Source: Utricularia gibba (lineage: Eukaryota; Plantae; Magnoliophyta). From it: DNA of 64,000 nt. The stretch's first letter is position 1, and the number at the start of each line of letters is the position of its first letter. The position numbers were made by a program, and so were the translations under genes. The notes under the pieces were generated by a model that was not told the DNA's origin, searched no databases, and was given only the letters and a program-made list of their open reading frames with translations. This document shows positions 7,337 to 63,424 of the stretch, in pieces. The DNA lies in the NCBI GenBank assembly GCA_002189035.1, contig NEEC01000014.1:1984001-2048000 (forward strand), written 5' to 3'.

Positions 7337-10300
7337 ATGAAAGGTCTCCAGGATCTGATCGAAGAAGCGAAGCTTCGTACAGTATGGTGGATGCTTTGTT
7401 GGTTTGCAGTGTGCTATTTCATGACGCGTAAGTTTTCAAGTTTGAACTTTTGCATTTAGTGTTCTCGGATAACCTGAATATTTGGTCTTCTTCTGAGAGA
7501 GTATTCTCTGTCGCTGAATCTTTTGCATGCTGGTTACACGGATACTCTTGCTGATTGCAGATACAAGCAAATCGATGTTGATGAATTTGCCCATAGCCCT
7601 ACTATTTGTTTTTGGATTGAGATTTTTGTTCAATGAGGTGGATTTTCGATGGAAGGTTCGGAGCTACCAGCCAAAATCCTACGTGTCACACTTAGAAAAA
7701 AAACAACTTTCAGTAAACGATTTTCGCCTTACAACCCAGCCTGCTTCACAAAAATGGAGAAGGAAAATAGATTCCCCCATCGTGGAGGCTGCTATTGAGG
7801 ATTTTGTCAACAATATTGTGCGTGATTTTGTGATAGATTTGTGGTTTTCTGAGATAACACCAGACAAGGAGACACCAGAGCTAATGCATTCAATGGTCAT
7901 GGATGCACTTGGGGAAGTTTGTGCACGTGTCAAAGAAATCAATCTTGTTGAGCTGTTGACAAAGTAGGTTTGAACGTTGTTTTACTGGAAACAAAATATT
8001 TATCATTATGGGAGAGAGTAAAAAACCTCATTCAAATTGCAGAAGCGTGGTGGACCTGCTGGGTGATCACCTTGATCTGTTTAGAATGAACCAAGCTGCG
8101 ATCGGTGTGGATGTAATGGCAACTTTGTCTTTTGAAGAAAGGGATGATAGGCTCAAGCACCATCTTCTGGAATCCAATGAACTGCACCCCGCTTTGATAT
8201 CTCCAGAGAGTGAGTACAAGGTGTAGAGGTGTTCTAACTCAAGAATGGTCTTGCCTAAATAATATTCCAGTTCCTTTTTTTAGATTTCTGTGATGAACTC
8301 TGCTTTTTGTTACATACAGGTTCTTCAGCGCATTGCTGGTGGAATTTTAGCTATAGTGCTGAGGCCAAGGGATGCCCAAAGCCCTCTAGTTCGATGTATT
8401 GCACGTGAATTATTAACATGCCTGGTTATCGAACCACTACTTAATTTTGCAAGCCCAGCGTGAGATGCTATTTTTTCTAGTTCTTGTTTTAATTAGTTGA
8501 AATCATGTGATTTTTTACTACAGAATTTCTGAACTCAGAACTCATGTTTCAGGTATATGAATGAGTTGATCGAATGCATAATTTCATACAATATTGATGG
8601 GTCCAAAGATACTCTCAATGAGCAGTCAACTCACGCAGAGAATCATAGGGGTGATCTTCTGATCTCTGAGGAACATGATCAAAGCAATAGATCTAGTTTG
8701 AGGAAAAATATGCCCTCAAGAAACGACGTTAAGTTTATGCCTCGTTCCATTGGAGAAAGGGTGGTACAAGCTGATTGTGGTTCAGATGCCTTGAATCCAA
8801 TAAGGTCTGAAACTTCAAATATTGTTAATCCAATGCAGGGTGAACCTGTTCCAGCCCGTCATGCTGAATGGGCAAAAGCATTTGAGGCTGCCACACAGAG
8901 AAGAACAGAAGTACTTACGCCAGAGAATCTTGAAAATATGTGGGCTATAGGAAGAAACTACAAAAAAAAGCTCCAACAGGCTGGAATAGGGGAAAAGGGT
9001 GGTAGCATTGCAGGTTCAAGTTCTCTGAGCAACCAATTAGATGAGAAGAATTGTGTAGGAGAAATTTCAAACAGCAAGCCTGAAACAAGTACAAGGATTG
9101 AAGAAAGTAATTATGCGGAATGTCCTCCTAGGCCACAATTGCATAATGCATATAGTGATCTCCCTGACGATGCTTTGCAGCATTTACAAGAGGTTAATGA
9201 AATGCTTTTCGAAAAAGAAAGCTCTAGCCTTGATGATCTTAACGACACTTCCATTGCTGCCTTGGAGAAAAGGAATAAGCTTAAAAGATCGAGCAGTACT
9301 TCTGACTTGAATGTTTTTTCAAACATTGAAGATGGTATCAAAGGCAAAGCCAGTGTGCCCATCATAAACGAGTACTGTAGTGCAGACTTTCAGAAGATAA
9401 ATGTGCAAACTATGATGAGCAGGTCAGACATGGTAGTAAATCATGACCGATCAAATGCTCAAAAGCTTAAATGTCGTGTAAGTTCTGCAATATCCGTTCA
9501 CTTTTTTCTGTTTTTGTTGTTTCAGTGGATTATTAGTTACTGATATTGTAAACTTCTTAAGCACAGCAAAATACCTAATTAAACAGTTTATGAGTGAGTT
9601 TGCCTTGGTTGTTTTATTTGACTGGAGAGATAACATTAAAAAGAATTTTTCGAAAATTTTGAAATTTGTGATATAGCTGATTAGTTTTTATTTCATTTCT
9701 GTCGTTTGGTTAATTTAACGCATTTTGATACCCTCTTTTCATGTTCAAGGCAATTGGGTATGCTTTATCACTTGGTGTTTCATGGCACTACTGATAGATT
9801 GCACTTGACAGGTTGTTGGTGCTTACTTTGAGAAAATAGGCTCTAACTCTTTTGCTGTCTATTCGATTTCTGTAAGTGACTCTGGAAAGAAAACATGGTC
9901 AGTGAAAAGGAGGTAAATTTCTGTCTTCATGGAGTAAAAAGTACTTTCTAATAAACAGCAAAAATATTTATTGTAATTGACAACATTCCGGTTTCACATG
10001 TTTGAGCTCTTGCTATGGACTTTATCTGCAGGTATAGGAACTTTGAGAGACTGCATAGGCAATTGAAGAATATTCCAAATTATACCTTGCACTTGCCACC
10101 CAAAAGGATCTTCTCTTCAAGCACAGAGGATGCTTTTGTACACCAGAGATGCATACAGCTTGACAAGTATCTTCAGGTGTAGTTGTCAATATTTTTTCTC
10201 TTGCCATGCTCATTATCGTTTTAATGGGAAACTTTATGCAGGATCTTTTATCAATTGCTAATGTTGCTGAGCAACATGAAGTGTGGGATTTTTTCAGTGC

Positions 10301-12746
10301 TCATTCAAAGGTGTGGGTTTTATTTTGAAAATTATGCAACAAATGCATGTTCTGAACTAATTATTGTTTCCCTTAATGAAGAATTACTCGTTCGGAAAAT
10401 CTCCTTCAGTAATGAAGACTCTTGCAGGTAATATCACCATAGTAAGGAATATTAAATTTTGTGTGGTTGATTTCTAAGTTTAGTTTTTGTTTTACATTTT
10501 TCAATATCAGCATTCTACATTAGGAGGAATTCTGTTTAGGATGTATGATTAGTGCAAACTTCTCACGGAACTTCACATCATTTTATACTTTTTGAACGCA
10601 TTGCATTAAATATATATGTGTATATATATATATATATACAGTTTTTTTTTGTGTAAAACAGTTAACGTGGATGATGCTGTGGATGATATTTTTCGACAAT
10701 TCAAGGGTGTGTCTGGCAGCCTTATATGGAAGGTTTCTGGCTCATCATCATCATTAGAACAGGATGCTTCTGTTACCCAACGACATTTGTCCTGGAATGC
10801 TGATGAACAAAGTAAATCAGCCATTATACAAAGTACCAACAACTCAATGAATAATTATTTGGACAATGATGAAGATGATAAGGATACCAACAATAGGGAA
10901 AAAAATCTTCAGGCTGTTGTCCCTGATGTTGAAATGATTTCAAATCTAGAAAATCCTATCAAAAGAAGTCTTACAATTGATGACTCGGATTTGAAGGAAA
11001 TTCACAGCTCAAGGTTGAGATCTAAATCAAGCAGTGTAAACAGTTACTTGGAAACACCACTAGCTTTATCATCTGTTATCAAGGAGGATCCAACAAGCGT
11101 ACCACCAGAGGTACTATTAGATTTGAATTAATTATTTTCATTCCTACTTTCTGCAGGTGAATATATCTTTTTCATTTCTTTTTTGCGCCATTGGTTTATT
11201 ATACGGGTGCTTTCCTTGATGGAATTTGATACGCTTTCAGTGGTCACCGCCAAACTTAAGTGTTCCAGTCTTGAATCTGGTCGATAAAGTATTCCAGCTA
11301 AACAGAAGAGGGTGGATAAGGTGATGGTTATCTTTGGTTTTTTTCCCAACACTGATTATTATCGGGTATACTGACAAAAGCCTTTAAATGTGGCTGACTG
11401 CTTGGAAGTGTGGTGCTTTTGCTTCTAAGGATGATCATTTCATTAATACATAGCCTGCCAAATTTTGGCTCATGAGTTTTACCCAAAATACAGGAGGCAG
11501 GTGTATTGGATATCCAAGCAAATATTGCAGCTGATCATGGAGGATGCTATCGATGACTGGCTTTCAAGTCAAATCCAATGGCTGCGCAGAGAGGATGTCA
11601 TAGCGCAAGGGATTCATTGGGTCAAAGATGTAAGCAAGACACTTTTTAGACGGAAACTTCATAATTGGCACCCCTTTCATTCCTTTTTTTCTCTTCTTAT
11701 TTTCTATGAATTCCATTATTTTAGTTGCTTCTCAAAGCAAGAGCAAGTAGCATCTAAATGGTTTTACTTGTGACAATTCTAAATGGCAAACCTTGCGTAT
11801 TCGTGAGATGGGAATGCTCTCATGTCTTCTTAGTCATCATTAAAAGATTCAAACAATTACCATTTCTTTTGCCTATGATATGTTGCGGCACATGATCATC
11901 TACATTAAATTTTTGAATTTTTGCCCTATCTATGGATTTTCTCTTGCCTGGTTTGTTTTAAAAACCACATTTTCCAGTAAACTGTATGGTCGTAATATTG
12001 TTTTTCGCTTCTTCCTAGGTCCTGTGGCCAAATGGGACATTCTTCCTTAAATTGCGGTCTCAAGGTCCCCTAGGTGATTCTGAAGCAACAACGAAAGCAG
12101 AGGAAATGAGAACCGTACCTCGCACAAGAGGTGCTCAACCAGGAACTTTTGAGCAACAGCTGGAAGCTGCTCGTCGAGCTAGTTATGTGAAAAAGATGAT
12201 TTTCGGTGAGTATACATATATATATGTCTGTGTGTATATGTGCATGTTGTTTTCTTTGTTCTCTGCAGCTTTTTTGACTTGCTCGATCCTACCAACAAGA
12301 TGTGGAGCTGGATGTATTTGATTACTTAGAAAATTTTGAATATCATCTTTCAAGAAATTCCAAAGATAAAATCATATTCCTTCAGCACTCTATAATAGTT
12401 GTCTAGCAATTTTCAGATGGTCATTGCCTTTTTCTTCCCTGCAGATGGTGCGCCTTCTCCTTTGGTCAGTTTGATAGGTTATAAACAGTACAGGCGATCT
12501 GCCCGGGATATATACTACTTTCTTCAGGTACATCCATGTGAATCCGAATGTCACCTACCTTTCCCAATGGCCGTGCCTGCAATAAAATGTCTTATACATT
12601 GGAACCTTCATTTACTGCAGTCCACAATCTGTTTGAAGCAACTTTGGTATGGGATACTGGAGATTTTTCTTATATCAGTCTTCCCTGAATTGCGGGACCT
12701 TGTCGTAGATATTCACAAAATGAATTCCCAGTCGGTCTGTGTATAG
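7337..12746 (+). CDS. PXA / PX (phox) / nexin-C domain sorting-nexin-like protein, multi-exon
   Basis: MKGLQDLIEEAKLRTVWW start; PXA segment WRRKIDSPIVEAAIEDFV..IVRDFVIDLWFSEITPDKE; PX segment YRNFERLHRQLKNIPNYTLHLPPKRIFSS; WISKQILQLIMEDAIDDWL; C-terminal STICLKQLWYGILEIFLISVFPEL. Confidence 0.88.
10607..10638. repeat. (TA)n microsatellite in an intron of the PX gene
   Basis: Direct reading: TAAATATATATGTGTATATATATATATATATA just upstream of the acceptor region. Confidence 0.8.
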
Positions 12747-21418: not shown

Positions 21419-22771
21419 TTATGTTCCCATTGGGCCAAACTCGGGAACCATCCAGACCTTGACGCTGCGATCGAGGCTTCCGCTGTACAGAATCCATCTC
21501 TCGTCCTGGTCAGTGGCGCCGCCGTCTTTTTCCACCGCCAGACACTTCACGGGGCCGCTGTGCCCCGAGAGTACGGACACACAAGTATGTTCGCCGGCGA
21601 GATCACGCCTCCAAATGCAAATGTTCTTATCAGCGGATCCACTCATGACTAGACTGCCCGCTGAAGCCAAACAGAGAACCGCCTGCTTGTGGCCGCGGAG
21701 CACCCCGCCGAAGGCCATGAAATGCTTTCTTCTCTCCCAGAACTTGACGAGCCCATCGGAGGACCCGACGTAGACAGAATTTCCTTTCAGGTTAGTTACC
21801 AGGGACGTCACCGCGTGGTCTTGCCTCAACATCGTCTCCACCAAAAGATGCTGAGTCGCTCTTCCTACCAATTCCCGCCGCCACGCCTTCACAGTGCCGT
21901 CGGCGGAGCCGGTGAAAACCAGACCGAATGCGATGGCGATGGAATTCACGGCGTCGTCGTGACCATGAACGGATTCAAGGCATTCGGAATTGGAAATTTT
22001 CCATACTTTCCAGGTTTTATCCCAAGATCCAGAGTACAACAAACCGAGATCTGAATCAATGCTCAAGCACGACACGGCGTCGTAATGCTTAATCCACGGA
22101 ACCATTCGTTTCCTTCCGATTACCGTGTAATTAGTTGGATTAATCGCCGTTTTCAACAAATCTCTCGTCGCCGGCAAACTTCCGACGCGTTTATGAGTGT
22201 TGTGCCGTTTACCCCCGCCGGGAAATCTCCAAACCCTAATTTTCCCATCTTGGTGACCCGTGAAAATCTTGTTCTGAAACACGCCTATGGCTTTTACCAG
22301 CCCACTCCTCGATTTAAACCCCTGAAACTCCTGAAAATTCTTCCAGATCCTGATGTTCTTGCTCTCAGATCCCGTGTACAGCAAATCACCGGCGGTGGCA
22401 AGCGAGTAAACGTGTCCTTCCTCGCGGATGAGTGATCCAATCAACCCGTTCTTCACCTCCTCTGCCTCTCCTCCGGTCTGATATATCCAAGGCGATTTCG
22501 TGTACGGCGACGACTGGTTCCACGGTGACGCCGTAAGAGGCGATGAAACGGCGGTTTCGGGATTCGAGCACGGCGTTCTTCCTCCGTCCATCAGGGGACT
22601 CCCCCTCGATATGGCAGCGTCGCTTCTCCGACGGGGATAATGGCGGTTACTGAGCAGATCTTCGTCGCTCTCCATTTCTTCATAGGTGAGAATCGCTCCG
22701 AGCTTTTTCCGGCGGCTACCACTCTTCCCCGGCAAACCTAACCCACCTCGAGACGAATTTTCAAAACCCAT
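21419..22771 (-). CDS. WD40-repeat protein, JINGUBANG-like, intronless
   Basis: ATG at 22771; LIREEGHVYSLAT.GDLLYTGSESKNIRIW, FTGHQDGKIRVW, WIKHYDAVSCLS, LYSGSLDRSVKVW. Confidence 0.87.
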   Translation of the reverse strand: MGFENSSRGGLGLPGKSGSRRKKLGAILTYEEMESDEDLLSNRHYPRRRSDAAISRGSPLMDGGRTPCSNPETAVSSPLTASPWNQSSPYTKSPWIYQTGGEAEEVKNGLIGSLIREEGHVYSLATAGDLLYTGSESKNIRIWKNFQEFQGFKSRSGLVKAIGVFQNKIFTGHQDGKIRVWRFPGGGKRHNTHKRVGSLPATRDLLKTAINPTNYTVIGRKRMVPWIKHYDAVSCLSIDSDLGLLYSGSWDKTWKVWKISNSECLESVHGHDDAVNSIAIAFGLVFTGSADGTVKAWRRELVGRATQHLLVETMLRQDHAVTSLVTNLKGNSVYVGSSDGLVKFWERRKHFMAFGGVLRGHKQAVLCLASAGSLVMSGSADKNICIWRRDLAGEHTCVSVLSGHSGPVKCLAVEKDGGATDQDERWILYSGSLDRSVKVWMVPEFGPMGT

Positions 22772-34554: not shown

Positions 34555-34719
34555 ATGTTCCCAGGGATGTTTATGCGGAAGCCGGACAAGGCGGCGGCGC
34601 TGAAGCAGTTGAAGTCACACGTTACTATGTTCGGAGCATGGGTTGTTGTGATTAGGGCGGCACCCTACGTTCTGCACTACATCTCTGGCGAAAAAGAAGA
34701 ACTCACGCTTCAGCTCTGA
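34555..34719 (+). CDS. TOM6: Mitochondrial import receptor subunit TOM6 (54 aa; not in the ORF track)
   Basis: Manual translation MFPGMFMRKPDKAAALKQLKSHVTMFGAWVVVIRAAPYVLHYISGEKEELTLQL* matches plant TOM6 as I recall it. Confidence 0.93.
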   Translation: MFPGMFMRKPDKAAALKQLKSHVTMFGAWVVVIRAAPYVLHYISGEKEELTLQL

Positions 34720-35409
34720 ATCGGAACTATAGCGTTGTTTCCTACTCAGGTACAAAAGTCGTGTTTTGTTATTGAAGTCTGCTTGAAACTCTAAAAAACT
34801 CTTTGTCAATCCCGCATTGCGATGTCTTGTTCCGCTAATGATTTCAGGATTTGCACGATGCTTTCAATATTTCGTCTTGTTTTCTATTTAGGTTTTGAAA
34901 TTGGATGATCGGTTTTATGATACTGTGGGTGTGGGTGTATTCTATTTCAGTTGATAGAATTTCAGTAGAACAAGTCTGTAGTTGCTGTTGTTTAGGCTAA
35001 ACCGCGAGTGCAGATGAATGATGGGTTCTGCACTTCATTGCAGATATGCAGTTCTGAGAATGAAGTATTTGCACTCCTCCGGTCCGTTAAGATATTGCAA
35101 CTCTAGTGATGTTGAAATAAACTTCATTTAGCCTCTGTGGTATCCCCTAACTGTTCCCCGTTTACATCTTGCTTTTGGATATCTGATAGAAGTGTTTTTG
35201 CTCATCGATAACCATCTGCATGTTTTCCTTTACTCTTGCTGCGCATCATTCAGTAGTGAGTACCCTTTTATTGACAAAGCCAACAGAGCAAATGTAAATG
35301 GTTGAGCATAGATCAAATAGTCCATGCCATGACCTTATGGGAACCTTAAATACTCCAGCACTAGGATGGTCTTAACCAGGGAATGAGGTTTGAGCCATGA
35401 TGGATGGCT

Positions 35410-36202
35410 TCATTCAGAGCCGTAACTCACATCAGCGGTACCAACAGCTGTCTCCTTCGCGGCCTTCCCCGGAGGACGCTCACTGGCAGCATTGGCTGCA
35501 CCGTTATTCACTATCTGGCTAAACAGCTTCACAAGTTGAACCTGCAGATCCTGTTTACTCACCAAGCTTAATGCACTAACAGCTCCGAGTATGGTTAGAG
35601 CTGTCTTAGCTGTTGCAGATGCAAAAACCAATGCTTTTTGCAACGGTCCTGATGCTTCTGGCTGCCCCCCATTGTTCTCCCCATCCGCATTCTCTGTAGC
35701 TCCATTTTGAAGGAATTTCAGAAATGGTGTCAAGAGGCCATTGATATCCTTAGATTCACCAGCGAATGCAATGACTTCATTAATGACTTCCAAGCTCTTG
35801 CCCTTGTATTCCTCCAGCTCTTTGAGCAGTTTCGTTTGGCTCTGCTGGATCGCCGCTAAGGCCGTTTCTCTGTCGCGCAGCTGCTGCTGCGCTAGAGCCT
35901 GGAAAAGCAATTGTCATTTTGGCAATCCATCGAACACTTGAACGGCAGTGACACCAACTAAAAAAACGTTACAAATCGAATACCTGCAAAGAAGAAAGGT
36001 GGCCTTCAAGGGATTCAAGAGCCTCTCTTATATTCGCAAGGCATTTTGCTTCGTCTTCAACCCCGAGCTGTTGATTTTCTGCATCGGAACTCGCTTTTGA
36101 TTCACCTCCATTTTCTCCACTCGTCTGGCAACTGACTATCTTAGACTTCAACTCCAGGATTTTCGCCAAAAACAACGATACCGGATCTTCAGCGTCACTC
36201 AT
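35410..36202 (-). CDS. PDV2: Plastid division protein PDV2, divergent, 2 exons (35984-36202, 35410-35898), 235 aa
   Basis: LFLAKILELKSKI, LANIREALESLEGHLSSLQ|AL, LLKELEEYKGKSLEVINEVIAFAGE, TM segment, PPGK and terminal DVSYG match the PDV2 architecture. Confidence 0.85.
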
Positions 36203-36493: not shown

Positions 36494-39294
36494 CTATGAG
36501 CCCATTAATGTCTTCTCGGCCCAATTAGAAACAAGCTCGTTTGAGAGAAGAACTGTGAAGGAGAAATCGTGGGGAATCCAATCAATTCTCTTCCACAGCC
36601 TTCCGTTGTCAGCCACCTTCCTCCATGATGCTGAAGGCAATGCGTGGAAAATCTCTTCCGCCAAAGATGATTGAGTGTAAATCTCCGAATCCTTCACGAA
36701 ACACTCCACATTTTTCGGTACGAGAACTCTGTTTTCCTTGTGTCGCTTTACGTTCATTTGAATGTACTCTTCTTTCGCCGTTTCCAGTTGCTTCAACACT
36801 TTCTTCCCCGAGTATACTCGTATCTGAGACAACGTTGTTGAAAAAGGAACTTTTTTTTATGATGATGATGATTGATCGCGGCATACCGGTGGATCAGATT
36901 TGCATCCAGTAGAAAGGGCGAAACGGAGACGTGGCTCACTGGGTTTTATGGCATATGAATTGAGTTGAACTCCGGTTTTGAACTTTGACTTTGGAAACAG
37001 CAACAGATTCAGCCACTGCACGCATGCATTGAATGTAATACGAGAAAGGGAAGAAACAGAAACTGTTAGTTTATCGAATGTTGGTGTAATCCATTTGAAA
37101 ACCTGCGCGGGGCGTGGTGTTCTGCATCGTAGAATCGAGCTTTGGATTGTTTCTATGTCTACAGGGAGACCTCCAACGATGTATGCAGCCTGGATCAATG
37201 AAAATGTTGTGAAAAAACAGGGAAAGGGACTGAGAAGTTGAAGTTTGAGTGGAATCTTGTTACCTTTAAAACTAAATTTGTCCGCCTAATGTTTCCTCTT
37301 GGAATCCCATGAACCAGAAATGCCTGCAGATTTTTGGATCAGAGTGGAATGTGCAGCGTAATGTGAGCATGTATGAGCAGAATCTTCTTACATGCATTAC
37401 TAGTGAATTGTGAATATTGATCCAAAAGGCCATCTTCTCTTCATGCTTAAGCTTTCCGGGATCAACTTTGGCTAATCTAGATATAATTGATCTGAAATAT
37501 GTAGTGATCAGGCCTAACAGCTCATATGTATCATAGATATATCGATAGCACTACAAGATTTCAAGTACCTATAATGGTGGAGCAAGTGGTAAGTAGATTT
37601 GAGCATTTGGGAGTTTGTGAGAAGGCCTTGTATTTTAACTGCAGGGAAGAAAGACTGACGAGGTTCTTTCAATCCGTCAAATCCGAATGCGTCATGCCTT
37701 GAAAGGGGATGATCAGAGAGATGGCAATATATCAATGAGATACATTTGATCATCTCCTCAGAAAGCCAATTCGGAGTTTTATCTGTTGGACAGTCTCCCA
37801 GGGCAGCATTTGAAGTTGAATTATGCACCCTCTGCAGGCATTATTCCAAGTAAGGAAACACCCTTTTATTGACATTTATGTGAAACCACAGTTTGGAAAA
37901 CTAGAAGCAGGTACCTCAAGCATTGACAAGGGCAAGGAGTGGTAAATATCTGGAGTTTCACATGAAGGTGATGCCCGAAAAGAGGAAACCGAGTTTCTTG
38001 ATAGTGAGGAATGACTCCGGTGGATTCCGGAGTCAGTTAGCTTTTCCCCCACAAGAATGCCCGGATTTAGCTTTTCCTTGGAAGAAGGGATGCTGCATCT
38101 ACGAGTTGTGTCTTCCCCCAAATTGTTGGTTTCATCATTGTTGCCTCTTCTATCAGCCAAATCGGGCATCTTCTTCACACAACTACTACTCAGTGATTGC
38201 AGATACTTCTCCAAGCACAGGACTTCCAACTCCAGAAGGGAAACTTCCTTGATCAGATCCTCAGCAGGCTGGAGAAGAAATGGCCCACAAATTCAAAAGG
38301 GAAGGAACACAAGGTTTCATCAGTTTTCAGCGATCAAAAATTGAGATTAAGGTAAAAAATAACCTTAGAAAGTGATTTATAAGCAGGTTCATCAAACAGA
38401 GGCTGGAAACTCAGAGCTTTCTCCAATGCAGCCCTAATGGCTTTCTGGGCATCCAATTCTTTCTGAAGCTGGAGAATCTACAGAAGCAGCATTTCAAATT
38501 TTCATCCTTAAAATGACACTCTCTCTTCTCTTAAAACAAAAAATTACCTCTTTTTTCAACAGGTCCTGCGTTTGTCCTGGGGATAATCTTCTTCTTCTGG
38601 TGTCCAAACTACTGGAATACCCCATGACAGCTCCGAGGAATACAGTTGCAGAGATGTTTCACTAGCAGACGGAGGGAAGAAGAATGGAGGAAGGAAGTGT
38701 AAAGCGAACCCGACAAGAAAGAGCCAAACACTTAGAAACAGAAATGAAGAAAATGCATCTCATCCCATGAAAAGTTCCACCGCTGTAAGAGGAGACGCAC
38801 TCACCGCAAACCCCACCCACCAGCACTAGCCTGCCCACAGACAGCTTCACATCCAAATTAAGGGAATATTGAGATGCAGCCGAAATGCGGAAATGTCAAA
38901 TAATCCAGGAGTTATATAGGGCAAGGACATCCTCCAGATCTATGCACTGAAAGGAAGTCAAACCAAGAAAAGTCAAGGTACGGACATCGTTTTTTTTTTT
39001 TGCTAAATAACGAGTATCATGGAGTTGCCATATTTAAGTACATTTTACCGTCCAAAATCATTTGTTTATGATATCCCAAAAAATACTCCGCAGGGAATCT
39101 TGACCTTTTGAGGGGATACGAATTTCCTTTTCTGTGGCAGGGAAGATCCGAGAATAGTGATGGGTCTTATGAATTCAGAAGGTCGGAATACCTCCCCTTT
39201 TTGACTTGTGAAGAAGGGTTGCCATCTTGAAGTTGGTTTCATCCCCAATTGACCCGTCACGCATAAAAAGAAGCGACTTTGGCCTCATCCTCAT
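36494..39294 (-). CDS. Lzipper-MIP1 + DUF547 domain protein, multi-exon; start codon uncertain
   Basis: ILQLQKELDAQKAIRAALEKAL, PAEDLIKEVSLLELEVLCLEKYL, PNWLSEEMIKCI, EEKMAFWINIHNSLVMH, AAYIVGG, EPRLRFAL, KRIDWIPHDFSF. Confidence 0.82.
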
Positions 39295-54664: not shown

Positions 54665-56726
54665 ATGTCTGAGAACAAGGATGTCTTCTCCGGTCGACCT
54701 GAGCCCGGTTTCGACGCGCCCAAGAAACCTCCCCGGAATAAGTACGCCATGGCTTGTGCTTTCCTAGCTTCGATGACCTCCATTCTGCTGGGATATGGTA
54801 CGGTCACACTCTTCAATTCTGTTTCTGATTAGCAGATTATATGAGCGCTAACTGGAGGAAAATTTTAATGGTGTGCAGATATCGGAGTGATGAGTGGAGC
54901 TATAATCTACATACGAAGGGATATACGCATGACCGCTGTCCAGCAAGAGGTTATAATGGGAATTCTCAATCTTTACTCCCTCATCGGCTCCGCCCTCGCC
55001 GGAAGGACCTCCGATTGGCTGGGGCGGCGCTACACCATCGTTCTCGCCGGGGCTATCTTCTTCGTCGGAGCCCTTCTCATGGGCTTCGCCACGAATTACG
55101 CTTTCCTCATGGCCGGCCGGTTCGTCGCCGGTATCGGTGTCGGGTACGCGCTCATGATCGCTCCCGTGTACACGGCGGAGCTGGCGCCGGCGTCTTCCCG
55201 AGGCTTCCTTACTTCTTTCCCGGAAGTCTTCATCAATTTTGGTGAGCGATTATTTAATTAAAATCTTGAAGCCTCTTCCTGGCTGTTTCTTTGTCCTATC
55301 CTTGAATTAAATTTCTACACTGATCCAGTAGCATGATTGTGGGGACCACCTCTATTTCAATTATTTCCGTCTTAAATGATCTTTAAAACTAAAATTGATT
55401 TATTGTAATTAACGGATACTCTTTTGATTTTATTACAATAATCTGATTTCCACAATTTTTTTGTTCTTACATTTGAACATTTTTTTTTTATTAAAAATTA
55501 GTTTTTAAAATAGATGTGGAAAATACTTCCCCTTGTCTTGGCACTAGCTCAGGAATAGAAAATCGAACTATTATAAGCTTTTATCATGATTAACGGTGGT
55601 TAACGATGTCGCTAATTGTGATGCTTCCTGCGTTTGAATTTTAATTTCAGGTATACTCGTGGGTTATGTATCCAACTACGGCTTTTCGAAGCTGCCGCAG
55701 CGGTTGGGATGGCGATTCATGTTGGGGGTAGGCGCCGTCCCTTCGGTTCTGATCGCGGTGGGTGTTCTCGCGATGCCAGAGTCGCCGCGGTGGCTGGTCA
55801 TGCAGGGGAGACTGGGCGATGCGCGCCGTGTCCTCGATAAGACGTCGGACTCGCCGGAGGAATCCAAGGAACGATTTGAGGACATCAAAGAGGCCGCCGG
55901 GATCCCCAATGATTGCAACGACGAGATCGTGGCCGTGGGCAAACAACACCACGGCGAAGGCGTGTGGCGGGATCTGTTCCTCCGGCCGACGATGCCAGTG
56001 CGCCATATTCTAATGTGCGCCATCGGCATCCATTTTTTCCAGCAGGCGAGCGGAATAGATTCCGTGGTTCTCTACAGCCCAGAGATCTTCGGCAAAGCCG
56101 GGATCACTAGCGACAACGATAAGCTTCTCGCCACGATGGGCGTTGGATTGACGAAAACGCTCTTCATCCTGGTTGCCACCTTCATGCTCGACAAGATCGG
56201 ACGGCGGCCGCTGCTCCTCTCCAGCGTCGCCGGTATGATTCTCTCCTTGGTCGGCCTTGCGCTCGGGCTGACGGTTATCGGTAGATCTGACACCAAGATA
56301 ATCTGGGCCGTTGCTTTGAGCATTACATCGGTGCTAGCATTCGTGGCGTTCTTCTCGATTGGGATGGGGCCCATCACGTGGGTGTACACCTCCGAGATCT
56401 TCCCTCTACGGCTGAGAGCGCAAGGGTGCAGTATGGGCGTCGCAGTGAATCGCGTCACCAGCGGAGTTATTTCAATGACGTTTCTATCCTTATACAACGC
56501 GATAACCATCGGAGGCGCATTCTTCTTGTACGCTGGGATCGCGACGATTGCCTGGGTGTTCTTTTACGCTTTACTCCCTGAGACCCGGGGGCGACCGCTC
56601 GAGGAAGTGGAGACTTTGTTCGGGTCCTTCTTCAAGTGGAGATCAACCCAAAGGGCATTGAAGGAAAAAAAGACCAACCAGAGCAGTGGCGCAGTGGAGT
56701 GGGAGAGCAAGACAGGCCACAACTAG
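54665..56726 (+). CDS. Polyol/monosaccharide transporter (PMT/PLT5-like), copy A, 3 exons, intact
   Basis: RNKYAMACAFLASMTSILLGYD, AGRTSDWLGRRYTI, PVYTAELAPASSRGFLTSFPE, PESPRWL, FFQQASGIDSVVLYSP, LDKIGRRPLLL, SEIFPLRLRA, PETRG. Confidence 0.95.
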
Positions 56727-56923
56727 TAGTGTAGCTTCGATAAATTGCAGCTGTAAAAACAGTGCTATCTTAGCAAGGGCGTTTGTGTCTTGGCCACAGC
56801 GACTGCTATTAATAACAGTAAACCCATGGCGGATTGATCAGCTTCCTTCCTCCTCTGCCACCTGTCATCCTCTCCATGTTCTACATATAGCATCTATCCG
56901 ACCCACCTAACACCACACTGACG

Positions 56924-58799
56924 ATGCTGGAGGGCGAGGATACCCTCTCCGGGCAGCCCGCCGCCGGTGCCGGCTCGCCCAGAGAACCCCGCCGGAACAA
57001 CTACGCCATGGCTTGTTCTTTCTTGGCTTCAACGACGACCATTTTACTGGGATATGGTATCGCTATTTTCTTTTACTTTATACTTCTTCTTATTTTCTAA
57101 CTACGAGAGAGAGAGAGATTGCTTCACTATCGAAATTCTAATGGTGTGCAGATATAGGAGTGATGAGTGGAGCTATTTTCTACATACGAAGAGATATACC
57201 CATGACTGATGTCCAGCAAGAGGTTATAATGGGAATTCTAAACCTTTACTCCCTCATCGGCTCCGCCCTCGCCGGAAGGACCTCCGATTGCTCGGACGGC
57301 GCTACACGATCAATATCGCCGGAGTTATATTCCTAGTCGGGGCGCTTCTCATGGGCTTTGCCACGAATTATGCTTTCCTCATGGTCGGCCGCTTCGTTGC
57401 CGGCATCGGTGTGGGTTACGCAGCCATGATCGCTCCCGTGTACACCGTGGAGCTGGCGCCGGCGTCCTCCCGCGGCTTCCTTACGTCTTTCCCGGAGGTC
57501 TTCATCAATTTCGGTGAGCCATGAATAAAGCATTATTAGTATAATCATTTTTCATTCCTTCTTCCTCGCTTTTTGTGTTGTCATGAGACCTAAATTTCTC
57601 TGTGGGTCCCGAAATTACAAAAAAACATTCCGTGTTCATCTTTGCCACAAAAATTGCAGGTGTTTGATGAAGTGAAGTTATTCCTTTTAATAAAAAATTC
57701 GTTCGTACGCTGAATTGCAGGAATACTTCTTGGCTATGTATCAAACTACGGCTTCTCGAAGCTTCCGCAGCGTTTGGGATGGCGATTCATGTTGGGAATA
57801 GCCGCCGTCCCTTCGATTCTAATCGCGGTGGGAGTTCTGGCAATGCCGGAGTCGCCGCGGTGGCTAGTAATGCAGGGAAGACTCGGAGACGCGCGCCGTG
57901 TCCTCGACCGGACATCCGGCTCGCCTGAGGAGTCGAAGGACCGATTAGCCGATATCAAAGAGGCCGCCGGAATCCCTGAGAGTTGCAATGACGAGATTGT
58001 CGCCGTCACCAAAAAACACCACGGTGAAGGCGTTTGGCGGGATCTGTTTTTCCGGCCGACGCTGGCGGTGCGCCACATCCTAATCTGCGCCATCGGCATC
58101 CATTTTTTCCAGCAGGCGAGCGGAATAGATTCCGTGGTTCTCTACAGCCCTGAGATCTTCGGCAAAGCCGGGATCACCAGCGACAACGATAAGCTTCTCG
58201 CGACGGTGGCCGTTGGATTTACGAAAACGATCTTCATCCTTGTGGCTACGTTTATGCTGGACAAGATCGGACGGCGCCCGTTGCTCCTCTCTAGCGTTGC
58301 AGGAATGACGCTGTCACTGGTGGGCCTGGGACTTGGGCTTACAGTTGTCGGTAGATCTGATTCCAAAATAATCTGGGCCGTTGCTTTATGCCTCACGTCC
58401 GTTCTAGTCTACGTGGCGTCTTTCTCGATCGGTATGGGCCCCATCACGTTGGTGTACAGCTCCGAAATCTTTCCTCTAAGGTTGAGAGCGCAAGGCTACA
58501 GTATGTGCGTCGCAGTGAATCGCATAATCAGCGGCATTCTGTCAATGACATTTTTGTCCCTGTACAAGGCGATAACTATCGGTGGGGCCTTCTTCTTGTA
58601 CGCAGGGATTGCGATCATCGCCTGGGTGTTCTTTTACAGTTTACTCCCTGAGACACGGGGAAGATCTCTCGAGGAAATTGAGACGTTGTTCGGTGCCTTT
58701 TTCAAGTGGAGGTCATCCCAAAGGGCATTTCAGGAAAAGGAGAGGAACCAAGGCGTTGAATTCACTCAGATGGAGAAGAACATCACCAGTACAGAGTAG
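56924..58799 (+). pseudogene. Polyol transporter copy B, with a -1 frameshift in exon 2 (pseudogene or assembly error)
   Basis: Same exon structure as copy A, but TCC GAT TG CTC GGA at about 57290 lacks one base relative to A (TCC GAT TGG CTG GGG), giving TAG at 57334-57336. It also has atypical substitutions (STTTILL, GPITLVY, SMCVAVN). Confidence 0.7.
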
Positions 58800-58929
58800 C
58801 AGGGCAGCCATTAGCTACAGGTAGCCCTCCCTCTATGTCTAAGGGCTTTTGTGTCTTTTCTTATCCTATTGCCACAGTGCAAATCGAAATACAACAAACG
58901 TAAATAAATATTTCGGGTTTGGGGCTTTA

Positions 58930-59150
58930 TTGTCCTATCACCGTAGGAATGTTTTTTTACCAAAAACACCCTGAGACCTTTGGCCTGCGAGCGTTTTTGA
59001 CGTTCTCAACTCTAAGGGCATTGAAGGAAGACAAGGAAAACCGACAGAGTTTAGCCCTGGACAGTCACTGACCACACTATTACTGTTACTACTACCAAAT
59101 TGAACCTAAAAGCCTTCTTAAGCAGGCTCCAGGGCTTTTATGTCTTTTAT
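58930..59150 (+). pseudogene. Decayed 3'-terminal fragment of a fourth PLT copy
   Basis: CCCTGAGACC (58969-58978) and AAGGGCATTGAAGGAA (59014-59029) are identical to copy A (56577-56586, 56651-56666). AGGGCTTTTATGTCTTTT (59131-59148) matches the copy B 3' UTR (58842-58859) at 17/18. Confidence 0.65.
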
Positions 59151-59881
59151 AGTATTTCCTGCCTTTATGGTGCACAAAAAATTGCACTAAAAGTGGAGAT
59201 TGAAATGTTCCTTTTTGAAACCGCAACCGCTGACACTCAAACTACGCCATGCTGCAGTGGGGATGACACTCAAATTACCAATATACCCCTGAATCGTATG
59301 AATGCTGCAGCACTTTGAATTTGAAAACCCACCATCGGCCGTTGTTTCGCGTTGAGTTGCCGCTGTTTCGCGTTTAGTTGACTTTTTAGCTACGTATGAA
59401 AGCCCACCAAATTTCCTTGTGAACAACAAAAAAAAACATTAAAAATATTCCCGTTGTTAATAATGCTGCAGTTGCAATAATTATTCATATGATAGATACT
59501 AAAAAGATCAATGTGCAATAGTGTAACGGACAGCTGGACATTTTTGACTGAACGCCATGGTACTTTCGTGAGGTTTGATTTAATTATAATTATTAAATTC
59601 AGAAGTGAATTTTATTTATAAACTATGTAAAAATTGGAAGAAAAACGTGACATAGAAACGTGATCTATATCGTTATTAAGATGGATTGGTGTGAACTGCA
59701 AGACTTCGTGGAGTTTTTTGTACAAGTGCACTTGGCGTTCTCAATGTGCAAGTAAATAACCTATTTTTTAAAGAAATAGATAGACCTTTTTTGAAAAATA
59801 GAAAAGGCACAAGTGGATGCCTTCTGCTTACTACTAGATATTTATAGGGGGTAGCAGCCATCGGATGCCGGACAAGTAAGC

Positions 59882-62045
59882 ATGGCCGCCAAGACAGCTG
59901 GACCACCCACCTCCGCCGCGGGCGACGCCGCTACCAAAGCCGGGAGTGCCGTCTCCGGGGAGCTTCCGGCCGCCCTTAACCCGAGTAAGAAGCCGGCGAG
60001 AAATTTGTTTTCTTTGGCTTGCTCCATCCTGGCTTGCATGACCTCAGTGTTACTCGGATACGGTACGCATCATACCTACAGCACCACTGATACAACCTGC
60101 AAATGAAATGCAAATTAATGAGGATGAATTTGTTCGTGTACCCAGATATTGGAGTCATGAGTGGAGCCATAATTTTCATCGAGAAGGAACTCAAATTAAC
60201 AAGTGTGCAAAAGGAGATCATCATGGGGATCTTCAGTCTTTACTCTCTTATCGGCTGCATCATAAGCGGCCGTACTTCTGATTGGATCGGCCGCCGCTTC
60301 ACGATCGTCATCGCCGGAGCAATCTTTTTCGTTGGCGCAATCCTCATGAGCCTTGCTACGAATTACGCGTTCCTAATGGTCGGGAGATTCGTCGCCGGAA
60401 TCGGCGTCGGCTACGCCCTTACTATTGCTCCGGTTTACACGGCGGAGGTCGCCCCCGCTTCCTGCCGCGGCTTCCTCTTAACCTTCCCGGAGGTTTTCAT
60501 CAACGTTGGTAAATATTTTATTATATTTTTTCATTAATGGGTCTAATTTTCTTGACTTTTTTTCTTACTAGCAATAGTGTTGTTTTATTACTAATAAATT
60601 ATCAAAATTTAAGTCGTCTTTTGGCATTAGACAACTAGATATAATTGCGTGGTTTTTGGACTATTTCTTAAATATTATTTTAATTTTGTATGCGTTGTCG
60701 TGACTAATGAGTATTACATAATTAAAAATACCTTTTTATCGTTAGGCGTTGTGTCATCGCTGTCTTGTTACCCCATGCCCTAAAGTGGGCGCTCTTGGCT
60801 TGGTACTACATTTATTTAATAGGTGTTTTGTAGTTACGTGTTATTCTTTTACTTTTTTAGTCCTAAAGTAAAAATGATTTTTATATGTTATCGTGTAATA
60901 ATATAAGTTTAATGGATTTTTGGATTAATTGAAGATAATCAATGTTTTTGAACAACAGGGATTCTCTTGGGATATGTTTCAAACCTGGCCTTCTCCAACT
61001 TACCGATCCACTTGGGATGGCGGGTGATGCTGGGTTTCGGCGTCATCCCATCCGCCTTCCTCGTAACGGTCATCATCTTCATGCCGGAATCGCCGCGGTG
61101 GCTGGTAATGCAGGGCCGTCTCGGGGAAGCTAAAGCAGTCCTCTACAAAACGTCGGACACGGAGGAGGAAGCCGAGATCCGCCTCTCGGAAATCAAAGCT
61201 GCCGCCGGTATCCCGAAAGCTGCTCAGATGACGTCGTTACCGTGGCTAAAGGTCACACCGGAGAGGGGGTCTGGCGCGACCTCCTCCTCCGTCCCACAGC
61301 ACCCGTACGTCACATCCTCCTCTGCGCCCTCGGGATCCATTTCTTCGAGATGGCCTGCGGAATCGAAGCCGTGGTTCTCTACAGTCCCGAGATTTTCAAA
61401 CAAGCCGGAATCAGATCCGATCATTACATTCTGCTCGCGACGATGGCCGTCGGATTCGTGAAACTGATGTTCATAATGGTGGCCACTTTCTTCCTCGACA
61501 AAGTCGGACGGCGGCCGCTGCTTCTCACGAGCGTCGGCGGCTGCACAGTGTTTCTAGCGGTTTTAGCCTTCGGGCTCACCGTGATCCAGAAATCCCCGGT
61601 CAGGGTTCCCTGGGCGGTGGCCGTCTGCGTAGTCTCCCTCCTCTGCTACGTGTCGTTTTTCGCCAGCGGGATGGGGCCCATCACGTGGGTATACAGTTCA
61701 GAGATATTCCCTTTGAGGCTGCGCGCCCAGGGGGCCAGCTTGGCCGTGGCCACCAACAGGGTGACGAGCGCTGTTTTCTCGATGACGTTTATATCCCTGT
61801 ACCAGGGCATCACCTTGGGCGGGGCGTTTTTCCTGTACGCCGGGATATCTGCCGTGTCCTGGTTTTTTATCTACAGTCTGTTCCCTGAGACACGGGGGAG
61901 GACACTGGAAGAAATGGAGGGCTTGTTCGGTAACTTCTTCAAGTGGAGGAGGTCATCCCCGAGGGCGTCGGAGGAAGACAAGAAAAGTAGCACCAATGGG
62001 CAGGTTGAAATGGGAGAGGCCTCCAACTTGGTTTCAAACACTTAA
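59882..62045 (+). CDS. Polyol transporter copy C (more divergent), with an apparent -1 frameshift in exon 3
   Basis: RNLFSLACSILACMTSVLLGYD, GRTSDWIGRRFTI, PESPRWL; the frame switches at about 61215 (GGT ATC CCG AAA GCT instead of CCG GAA AGC TGC); then GEGVWRDL, LDKVGRRPLLL, PETRG. Confidence 0.8.
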
Positions 62046-63424
62046 CACTCTTAAGGCCTTCAGAATTCCCGTACACTACGACAATTACAGAATTTTGTGT
62101 GTTGGAATGGGATGCGACATTGCCTGCACATATCTAATAAATATACAAATAAAATACATAGTTCGGTTTCGATGAGGTCTGACCTGGCATCATTAACCCA
62201 AAGTCGAATTTCATTGTCATTTGAAATCGTCCACGTGGGGAATTACCGAGGGTCATGTTGTTGGTTGGTGAGATAAAATTAATAATTCAATTTTCGCATT
62301 TAGAATACTTATTCCGATTTCAAATGAGAAATTAACTTTCACCTTCTTTCCGACACGAAAACTTTGGGAGTTGTATTAGACGACACACACATCGGATAAG
62401 GTCAATGTCTGTTTCAAATAATTTGTGGTTTTTTATTAAAAATACTTTTTTATTCAATAAAAAAACAGAAAACTTTCATCTTTTATTTTATTAGAATTAT
62501 TTTTTATGGAATAAAGCTGAGAGCCATGGGCTATGAGCGAAGCTCCAACGGCTGGGTAGGCTGGGGATGGGATCCATGGCCACACGTGGTGCGATCATGG
62601 AGCATTAACGACTTGTTAGTTTTTTAAAAAGAGGCCATTATTGTCCTTTTTGAAAAACCCACAACAAACTTCTCTTTCGGAGTTGACAAGAGCACGCAAC
62701 GCAACAAACGTGGCCAATGTTTCTGTAGTCAAACAACAACAACAACAAAAAGGACAACTTCAGATGAGATTACGTGTGCTTTCTTCTGAGTAGGACATAT
62801 AATTATAATTAAATTAAGAGAAATTGAGGTTTTTTTTAATGTTTTTTGGATTTTCCTAATTCAAAAGCGATTTTATATCATTATGAGTTGCTGGGAATAT
62901 AATCACCAACAAACACTAGTTAAACGTGGGGAACATGATGTAATAATTTCTAATACAAGTGAATATTAGAACTGAGTTAAAAAAACCATCCTTCAAATGG
63001 GTGTCCGTTTTCTTAAAAGGAATGGGCCAGGCTCATTACAATAATGGGCTTCATGGCCCAGTAATACAAGAAACCTGATGGTTAGTTGTGTTTGAATCTG
63101 GGGCCCATCATGTGATTTGTTTCTTTTCTGTACTGTACTGCCTTGGTTTAATGTGATATATAATAATTAAGAAAAAAAAAACTATGTTGGTAAACGGTAA
63201 CCCATCGGGGTGGATACAACCCGACCCGAAAATGGAGCCGAGCGGGATAAAGGGAGTTGACAATTTCACCCTCCGCTCGAAGGGTTGCTGCAGTTGCTCT
63301 TCAGAGTAGATCGATACCAGGGATTTATTTTTCTTCTCCTGATCACTATCAGGTCAAGGGAGGTGCCGATTCTCAGTGTATTTATTCATTTATCGAGGCG
63401 TTTGGATTTGAATCGGACAGCTCA

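Follow-up and report, generated by a model that had tools for sequence, protein, structure and literature searches.

PDV2 is located in the outer envelope, where its cytosolic part recruits DRP5B/ARC5, while its C-terminus binds ARC6 in the intermembrane space, an interaction that positions PDV2 and promotes the dimerisation of ARC6 (PMC13650779, PMC9945983, bioRxiv 10.1101/2024.01.08.574726). In the complex of the paralogs PARC6 and PDV1, W700 and Y798 form contacts with the carboxylate group of the last Gly, the last 10 residues of PDV1 sufficed for crystallisation and for binding as measured by isothermal titration calorimetry (ITC), and the substitution G272D abolishes the PDV1-induced dimerisation of PARC6 (PMC9945983). 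The tail of PDV2, together with its final Gly, thereby forms the physical link through which FtsZ-ARC6 at the inner envelope positions PDV2-DRP5B at the outer envelope and in the cytosol. Glynn and co-workers are said to have reported in 2008 that the corresponding change in PDV2, G307D, abolishes ARC6 binding. Here we describe a PDV2 gene, at positions 35410 to 36202, in a stretch of 64,000 nucleotides of Utricularia gibba (contig NEEC01000014.1, positions 1,984,001 to 2,048,000; referred to as the window), in which the part of the protein that makes up this link is strongly altered. The tail is otherwise near-invariant from monocots to asterids, and the parasitic genera Orobanche, Striga and Cuscuta keep it in its canonical form.

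By mapping the conserved positions of the PDV2 family onto the window gene we found that the losses are concentrated in the intermembrane part of the protein and that the terminal Gly has been replaced by Glu. The reading that we prefer, tentatively and with a probability of roughly 0.45, is that the gene is a live PDV2 that would have retained its cytosolic function; its canonical docking to ARC6, we infer, has been weakened or lost. A search of the literature on Utricularia in combination with PDV2, ARC6 or plastid division returned nothing.

The PDV2 tail and its last residue

The gene consists of two exons, which were treated separately throughout (searches, alignments, trees and folds). 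Its start codon, GT..AG splice sites and open reading frame (ORF) are all intact, and the exons, counted separately, encode a protein of 235 residues (73 + 162). The following features were distinguished (lengths are in nucleotides, nt, or residues).

35984..36202, minus strand: PDV2 exon 1, 73 codons with the ATG at 36202-36200, encoding the N-terminal cytosolic region MSDAED...ALESLEGHLSSLQ, with the 3' end ...CAG/GT
35899..35983, minus strand: single PDV2 intron, 85 nt, GT..AG, phase 0, at the conserved junction SSLQ/ALQQQQ
35410..35898, minus strand: PDV2 exon 2, 162 codons plus the TGA at 35412-35410
35749..35898, minus strand: cytosolic coiled coil of PDV2, exon 2 residues 1-50, ALAQQQ...AFAGESK
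35560..35634, minus strand: predicted transmembrane anchor, exon 2 residues 89-113, ALVFASATAKTALTILGAVSALSLV, the conserved AKT included
35413..35559, minus strand: intermembrane-space region, 49 residues versus ~70 in canonical PDV2
35464..35481, minus strand: E-R-P-P-G-K, a remnant of E-C-P-P-G-K (Cys to Arg), from protein and DNA alignments
35446..35463, minus strand: A-A-K-E-T-A, a probable remnant of V-V-K-E-R-V, from the DNA alignment to Handroanthus
35413..35436, minus strand: terminal octapeptide A-D-V-S-Y-G-S-E (canonical P-D-V-S-Y-G-C-G), with TCT (Ser) at 35418-35416 and GAA (Glu) at 35415-35413
35425..35430, minus strand: donor-like GTGAGT, i.e. the Val-Ser codons of DVSYG

The last codons, GAT GTG AGT TAC GGC TCT GAA TGA (35433-35410, minus strand), translate to ...PPGKAAKETAVGTADVSYGSE followed by the stop, and the C-terminus of the protein as a whole reads ...SERPPGKAAKETAVGTADVSYGSE. 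A preliminary description of this stretch had given the ending as DVSYGSE with GAA TGA, and sequence and translation read exactly so. It had also placed the GAA one base away from GGA; the difference is a single transition, and the canonical contigs L001 and L002 do use GGA at the same stop position (GAT GTG/GTA AGT TAT GGG TGT GGA TGA), while the terminal codons of Handroanthus are ...TGT GGC TGA. Compared with the canonical end, TGT has thus become TCT (Cys to Ser) and GGN has become GAA (Gly to Glu).

The acidic end is without parallel among the intact homologs that were retrieved. A total of 138 out of 155 PDV-family proteins end in ...G-x-G, the other 17 being globin read-through fusions, fragments or alternative isoforms, PDV1 models and unrelated sequences, and no intact PDV homolog with an end other than Gly was found among the 138. 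The last two residues of these intact proteins are mostly CG (113), followed by FG (7), LG (6), SG (6), WG (3), and YG, RG and TG (1 each). The 120 listed profile matches are the best-scoring of 165, by which the list is biased toward canonical tails; the 37 matches found by phmmer with the window's own exon 2 show the same G-x-G pattern. The earlier statement that the terminal Gly is conserved in PDV proteins and is acidic in this one is therefore borne out (G-x-G in 138 of 138 intact homologs, Y-G-S-E in the window).

Conservation by region was expressed over the alignment columns in which 54 asterid PDV2s show at least 90% conservation. Of these conserved positions, the window protein keeps the following numbers.

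Exon 1 (N-terminal cytosolic region): 14 of 21
Coiled coil: 16 of 21
DLLLPPYPxRP motif: 3 of 10
Membrane anchor: 6 of 7, AKT included
Intermembrane tail: 6 of 25

The cytosolic part, i.e. exon 1 plus the coiled coil, thus keeps 30 of 42 conserved positions and, with the anchor included, 36 of 49. Of the 25 conserved positions in the tail, 13 are gaps and 6 are substitutions in the window, and the lowest tail score among the 54 other PDV2s is 19 of 25. The DLLLPPYPxRP motif, for which we know of no assigned function, is reduced to INGLLTP (35725-35745, exon 2 residues 52-58) and is followed by a gap of 22 residues.

About 18 residues of the tail (~54 nt) are gone in frame between E-R-P-P-G-K and E-T-A-V-G-T-A-D-V-S-Y-G. 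What is left of the tail consensus C-P-P-G-K-V-x-V-x-E-x-G-x-x-R-C-x-V-K-E-R-V-E-x-P-F is E-R-P-P-G-K and perhaps A-A-K-E-T-A, and every alignment agrees that the two cysteines, the R-C and the Pro-Phe pair have been lost. The absence of the Cys-containing block V.V.E.GE.RC.VKERVE.PF, which had been noticed before, is seen in several alignments. At the DNA level, the alignment to Handroanthus displays the change from E-C-P-P-G-K to E-R-P-P-G-K (GTGAGTGTCCCCCGGGGAAGG versus GTGAGCGTCCTCCGGGGAAGG) and the correspondence of A-A-K-E-T-A to V-V-K-E-R-V (GTGAAGGAGAGAG versus GCGAAGGAGACAG). The history of the deletion is ambiguous between three forms. The protein alignment made with MAFFT contains one gap of ~17-18 residues; the DNA alignment to Handroanthus points to a pair of deletions, both in frame, on either side of A-A-K-E-T-A, one of ~11 residues that spans hairpin strand 1, the turn and the R-C, and one of ~7 residues that equals E-I-P-F-E-S-V; and against more distant homologs the DNA aligns preferentially as a collinear but degenerate tail. 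All three forms lack the same residues.

The preliminary description had taken the shortness of the protein as part of the same phenomenon. The tail has indeed collapsed, at a cost of ~18 residues, but a length of 235 residues is not unusual (the canonical-ended protein P0019 has 208 residues and that of Juncus effusus 216), and exon 2 contains other in-frame gaps, of ~22, 10 and 6 residues, as well. By eye, the protein encoded by exon 2 looks rich in Ala, Gln and Gly.

In the AlphaFold model of the window's exon 2, helices are predicted for residues 2-45, with a mean predicted local distance difference test (pLDDT) score per ten-residue block of 96, 96, 87, 69 and 61, and for residues 85-135, over the anchor, for which the best 19-residue window on the Kyte-Doolittle scale is a borderline 1.62. 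The modelled tail has no strands, and its last 27 residues lie in ten-residue blocks with a mean pLDDT of at most 48. The equivalent part of Handroanthus is modelled with a hairpin (strands 179-184 and 187-192; mean pLDDT 76-84 for residues 171-190). As far as these models go, the predicted beta-hairpin of canonical PDV2 is lost from the window tail.

In the crystal entry of ARC6-PDV2, 5GTB, the PDV2 part is precisely the C-terminal 24 residues of the Arabidopsis protein, LVKERVEIPFDSVVAKRDVTYGYG, and the segment lost from the window consequently overlaps the crystallised ARC6-binding peptide. Given that the loss of conservation is specific to this region (6 of 25 in the tail versus 36 of 49 in the rest), the canonical ARC6-docking module appears to be compromised. 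To that extent the interpretation in the preliminary description holds, and one of its premises, namely that an acidic substitution of the terminal Gly is disruptive, is documented for PDV1 in the form of G272D. The outcomes it had proposed, i.e. a rewired interface, independence from ARC6, a decaying gene or altered plastids, are narrowed but not decided between.

Orthology of the gene

The first assignment of the gene to PDV2 is upheld by homology, tree, intron position and synteny, all of which agree. A word-indexed protein search with exon 2 alone gave no matches (length window, few shared 5-mers), and an exhaustive HMMER search was needed. With phmmer, exon 2 had 37 matches among 1.84 billion representatives, the best of them at E = 4e-14. 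Six of the ten top matches that were looked up are NCBI models, three of which are named PDV2 (Andrographis, Impatiens and Carex) and three are unnamed (Orobanche minor, Juncus and Camellia); all nine top matches with a source name belong to the PDV2 family, by name or as unnamed models. The proteins P0030 and P0034, which are unnamed and were taken for PDV1 from their sequence, match exon 2 far more weakly (E = 3.6e-5 and 2.9e-4). A profile search recovered 165 PDV2 proteins, with many Lamiales among the 120 listed. PDV2 homologs carry the Pfam domain PDV_N (PF28116); a Pfam scan of both exons, with a library that predates this model, yielded nothing significant.

Exon 1 and the first 50 residues of exon 2 can be aligned over their length with canonical PDV2, exon 1 matching its N-terminus and being identical to that of Handroanthus at 40 of 70 positions (57%). 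In the case of exon 2, 80 of 157 positions are identical to Handroanthus (51%), the best identity in the 55-row tree set is 52%, also to Handroanthus, and a hand count on the pairwise alignment gives ~63% for the first 51 residues. In the corresponding tree, exon 2 of the window is nested within the core clade of Lamiales PDV2s (support 92/97), and the two best Logan matches group with Ipomoea and Cuscuta, not close to the window. The intron junction SSLQ/ALQQQQ is shared with the genomic contig L001 (gcag/GCATTGCAACATCAACAG), and an intron of ~1.27 kb at the same junction in Handroanthus is implied by two tblastx blocks (L006 about 10244-11510). Two public PDV2 models, P0006 and P0009, have long insertions exactly at this junction, which look like annotation artefacts due to intron retention or mis-splicing.

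On the Handroanthus contig NKXS01002704.1 the gene order is DUF547, PDV2, globin, all on one strand. According to tblastx the window is collinear with Handroanthus for DUF547 (38477-36530) and for both PDV2 exons, so that the adjacency and the orientation of DUF547 and PDV2 are the same in the two. The flanking features in the window are the following.

36530..38477, minus strand: DUF547 / Lzipper-MIP1 gene, the upstream neighbour and synteny anchor (Pfam DUF547, E = 5e-8)
35267..35272, minus strand: AATAAA, a candidate poly(A) signal 140 nt past the PDV2 stop, on the basis of a consensus match alone

Because homology, the conserved intron position, the placement in the tree and the DUF547-PDV2 micro-synteny with Handroanthus coincide, the window gene is the positional PDV2 ortholog and not a stray copy. 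PDV1 was considered as an alternative identity and was rejected, since the weak matches to P0030 and P0034, the tree placement and the synteny all point to PDV2.

Readings of the altered tail

It is unlikely that the gene is fully dead, because its ORF is intact, because all of its indels relative to Handroanthus (at least eight) preserve the frame, and because the divergence of its cytosolic part equals the general pace of the lineage. Lentibulariaceae have high substitution rates and small genomes, and an intron of 85 nt where Handroanthus has one of ~1.27 kb fits a strongly compacted genome. As to the pace, the JINGUBANG-like WD40 neighbour (21422-22771, minus strand) has its best matches in the Lamiales, with the highest identity to Genlisea aurea (72-73%) and ~63% identity to other Lamiales; in its tree it is the sister of Genlisea aurea, with a value of 99 in the Shimodaira-Hasegawa-like approximate likelihood ratio test (SH-aLRT) and with a long stem and tip (0.24 + 0.52), a placement that by itself makes the Lentibulariaceae the most likely source of the window. 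By this comparison the cytosolic half of PDV2 is diverging at the general pace of the lineage, while the part of the protein that is normally the most conserved has collapsed. Such a region-specific collapse suggests a relaxation of the intermembrane module rather than the death of the whole gene, and it is compatible with recent redundancy.

According to the reading that we prefer, the gene would be a PDV2 ortholog in a fast-evolving genome and most likely still a working one. Its N-terminal domain and coiled coil, which in Arabidopsis bring DRP5B/ARC5 to the plastid surface together with PDV1, would have been kept under constraint, and so would the single outer-envelope anchor. The intermembrane module, the C-terminus of which enters the ARC6 pocket in Arabidopsis, would have been selectively eroded, in that the predicted beta-hairpin, the Pro-Phe pair and the two cysteines fell to in-frame deletions, and Ser-Glu took the place of Cys-Gly at the end. 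The protein would then act mainly via the cytosolic half, and something else would have to place it at the division site; PDV1-PARC6, a second PDV2 copy and residual binding through the retained DVSYG are the candidates for this role.

Several observations weigh against this reading. The end branch of exon 2 is the longest in the PDV2 tree (1.04; median 0.13) and the amino-acid composition of exon 2 (35413-35898) deviates from that of the PDV2 alignment (chi-square p < 0.001), and with both of these a general relaxation would fit as well. The last 14 residues are identical to those of Handroanthus at 8 of 14 positions and DVSYG is in frame, which hints that the extreme C-terminus is still somewhat constrained and that it may still dock. 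Redundancy is plausible because several Lamiales possess two copies (the profile search found two PDV2 proteins each in Andrographis, Buddleja, Erythranthe and Sesamum) and because bladderwort genomes are known to have duplicated. Moreover, both the expression of the gene and its exact terminal bases are putative.

The alternative that invokes an artefact or a mistaken gene model, i.e. that an error in base calling or assembly created the GAA, or that the real C-terminus is spliced from GAT/GTGAGT, is in our view very improbable. One base does separate GAA from GGA and GTGAGT does fit the donor consensus, but GAA is accompanied by several independent differences, namely a Ser in place of Cys at the preceding codon, an Arg in place of the Cys of CPPGK, and the in-frame deletion of ~54 nt, and a single error cannot account for all of these. 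The alternative C-terminus that the preliminary description had envisaged does not survive either, as the donor-like string is the ordinary Asp-Val-Ser of DVSYG. L001 (GATGTGAGT) and Handroanthus have this string too, and in L002, a contig of spliced transcript, it reads GATGTAAGT; it is retained in the intron-less transcript contigs L002-L004, and exon 2 of L001 runs uninterrupted to the stop. Furthermore, none of 69 phase-0 AG acceptors located 60-1300 nt downstream leads to a Gly-ended peptide or to one with YG or PF, and a tblastn search of the 64-kb window with 22 canonical tails returned nothing beyond this locus except chance matches, all with an E of at least 0.04, and no second PDV copy. 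A splice-made C-terminus was thus rejected, as canonical homologs carry the same string and no usable downstream exon was found. A co-evolved interface, in which the short Ser-Glu tail still docks, the ARC6 pocket of the lineage has changed and the hairpin is no longer needed, has more to be said for it, although we consider it unlikely. The stretch E-T-A-V-G-T-A-D-V-S-Y-G has stayed in frame across two deletions, the terminal peptide (the 8 of 14 given above) is about as conserved as the rest of the protein, and the last 10 residues of PDV1 are enough to bind PARC6 in the crystal and in ITC. In addition, the short PDV2s of some monocots vary in the CPPGK region, which is missing in Juncus and reads CPHDK in Carex, which shows that the beginning of the tail can change in a PDV2 that is otherwise canonical. 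Yet neither the Pro-Phe pair nor the terminal Gly varies, not even in Juncus and Carex; an acidic side chain at the terminus resembles in kind the substitution G272D, by which PDV1 loses its function; and a changed ARC6 pocket in this species is putative, with the ARC6 gene lying outside the window.

Two further possibilities relate to the number of PDV2 copies in the family. A contig of Genlisea aurea, KE528400.1, is collinear with positions 21400-43900 of the window for MED13, a small TOM-like gene and JINGUBANG, and on that contig neither PDV2 nor DUF547, AOS, LACS or the ATL RING gene was found; two of its genes, one for a 732-residue WD40 protein and one that is NmrA-like, have no counterpart in the window. 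The lack of PDV2 in this segment may represent a lineage-specific loss of the gene, or the segment may be a homeologous one. It could be, and we deem this about as unlikely as co-evolution, that the PDV2-ARC6 bridge has been uncoupled or is being lost in the Lentibulariaceae, with the only PDV2 in the window having left canonical docking, the Genlisea segment having no PDV2 and the division being coordinated by PDV1-PARC6 or by another route. A little less doubtful is a decaying duplicate, which implies that a canonical PDV2 elsewhere does the work while the window copy drifts toward a pseudogene, the ARC6-binding tail being the first part to go. The presence of two copies in the four Lamiales genera, the long end branch with its deviant composition, and the loss of most of DLLLPPYPxRP are all in line with this, and the collinear Genlisea segment suggests that the family can do without a PDV2 copy at this locus. 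At the same time, decay has to be reconciled with an intact ORF, start codon and GT..AG intron and with indels that are without exception in frame; with a coiled coil and an anchor that keep 22 of 28 conserved positions and diverge no faster than the JINGUBANG-like neighbour; and with the ancestral syntenic place beside DUF547 that this copy holds.

A photosynthetic lineage that has the cytosolic half of PDV2 and lacks the hairpin and the terminal Gly provides a natural test of which parts of the link are essential, of whether ARC6 can co-evolve and of whether PDV1-PARC6 can substitute. If the bridge is truly uncoupled, the species would constitute a natural experiment on the dispensability of the ARC6-PDV2 link in a green angiosperm; if a canonical paralog exists, the case would reduce to the ordinary decay of a duplicate.

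The neighbourhood and the known PDV systems

In Handroanthus PDV2 is followed by a gene for a globin (non-symbiotic haemoglobin; L006 13571-15124), and the models P0011, P0173, P0191 and P0272 are read-through fusions of PDV2 and globin. Downstream of PDV2 in the window (34720-35409) no tblastx match of at least 35 bits to L006 13571-15124 was found. The place of the globin is occupied by a TOM-like ORF of 54 residues on the opposite strand to PDV2 (34555-34719, plus strand; MFPGMFMRKPDK...), which has a weak, below-threshold match to Pfam Tom5 (E = 2e-4) and which we take to resemble plant TOM6. Its counterpart in Genlisea (L005 8584-8736, minus strand, where L005 is KE528400.1) matches in two different frames near the end, as would be expected of a frameshift or of a C-terminus that has diverged. 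Further away, a tandem array of at least three sugar/polyol transporter genes spans 54800-62050 (plus strand), with a match to Pfam Sugar_tr at E = 3e-73 for 55659-56726 and highly similar ORFs at 57774-58799 and 60103-62045. The gene density of the window is ~1 per 4 kb.

Among the known systems, canonical PDV2 is the closest one, for which the proteins of Arabidopsis (AT2G16070; 5GTB), Handroanthus impetiginosus (P0160) and Andrographis (XP_051132428) were compared. The window gene shares with them the two exons, the intron at SSLQ/ALQQQQ, the N-terminal domain, the coiled coil, the single anchor with AKT, the DUF547 neighbour, the remnant E-x-P-P-G-K and the D-V-S-Y-G near the end. It differs from them in that ~18 tail residues, the hairpin, both cysteines and the Pro-Phe pair are gone, in that it ends in Ser-Glu instead of x-Gly, in that most of DLLLPPYPxRP is missing, and in the length of the intron.

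The Arabidopsis mutant pdv1-2 (PDV1 G272D) resembles the window gene in having an acidic residue in place of the invariant terminal Gly. Compared with pdv1-2, and with the reported PDV2 G307D, the window variant is natural, has Glu and not Asp, and comes with further deletions. PDV1 itself, which docks PARC6 and has a tail of the type that ends in ...R-G, has the same overall architecture and possesses the terminal Gly, whereas the window protein is much closer to PDV2 (E = 4e-14) and has the QQQ signature in its coiled coil, the PPGK remnant and the syntenic position of PDV2. The PDV2s of Juncus effusus (KAJ3670114, 216 residues) and Carex (259-263 residues) are also short, with a variable or absent CPPGK region, but they keep the R-C, the Pro-Phe pair and the terminal Y-G-x-G, which the window PDV2 does not. 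Finally, the canonical tail is gone as well from some database models, for example isoform X2 of Nicotiana tomentosiformis (P0246) and P0008, P0010 and P0236. These, however, are truncations, isoforms or fragments that stop or shift frame before the tail is reached, whereas in the window PDV2 the homologous last codons are present and in frame and it is the terminal residue that has been substituted.

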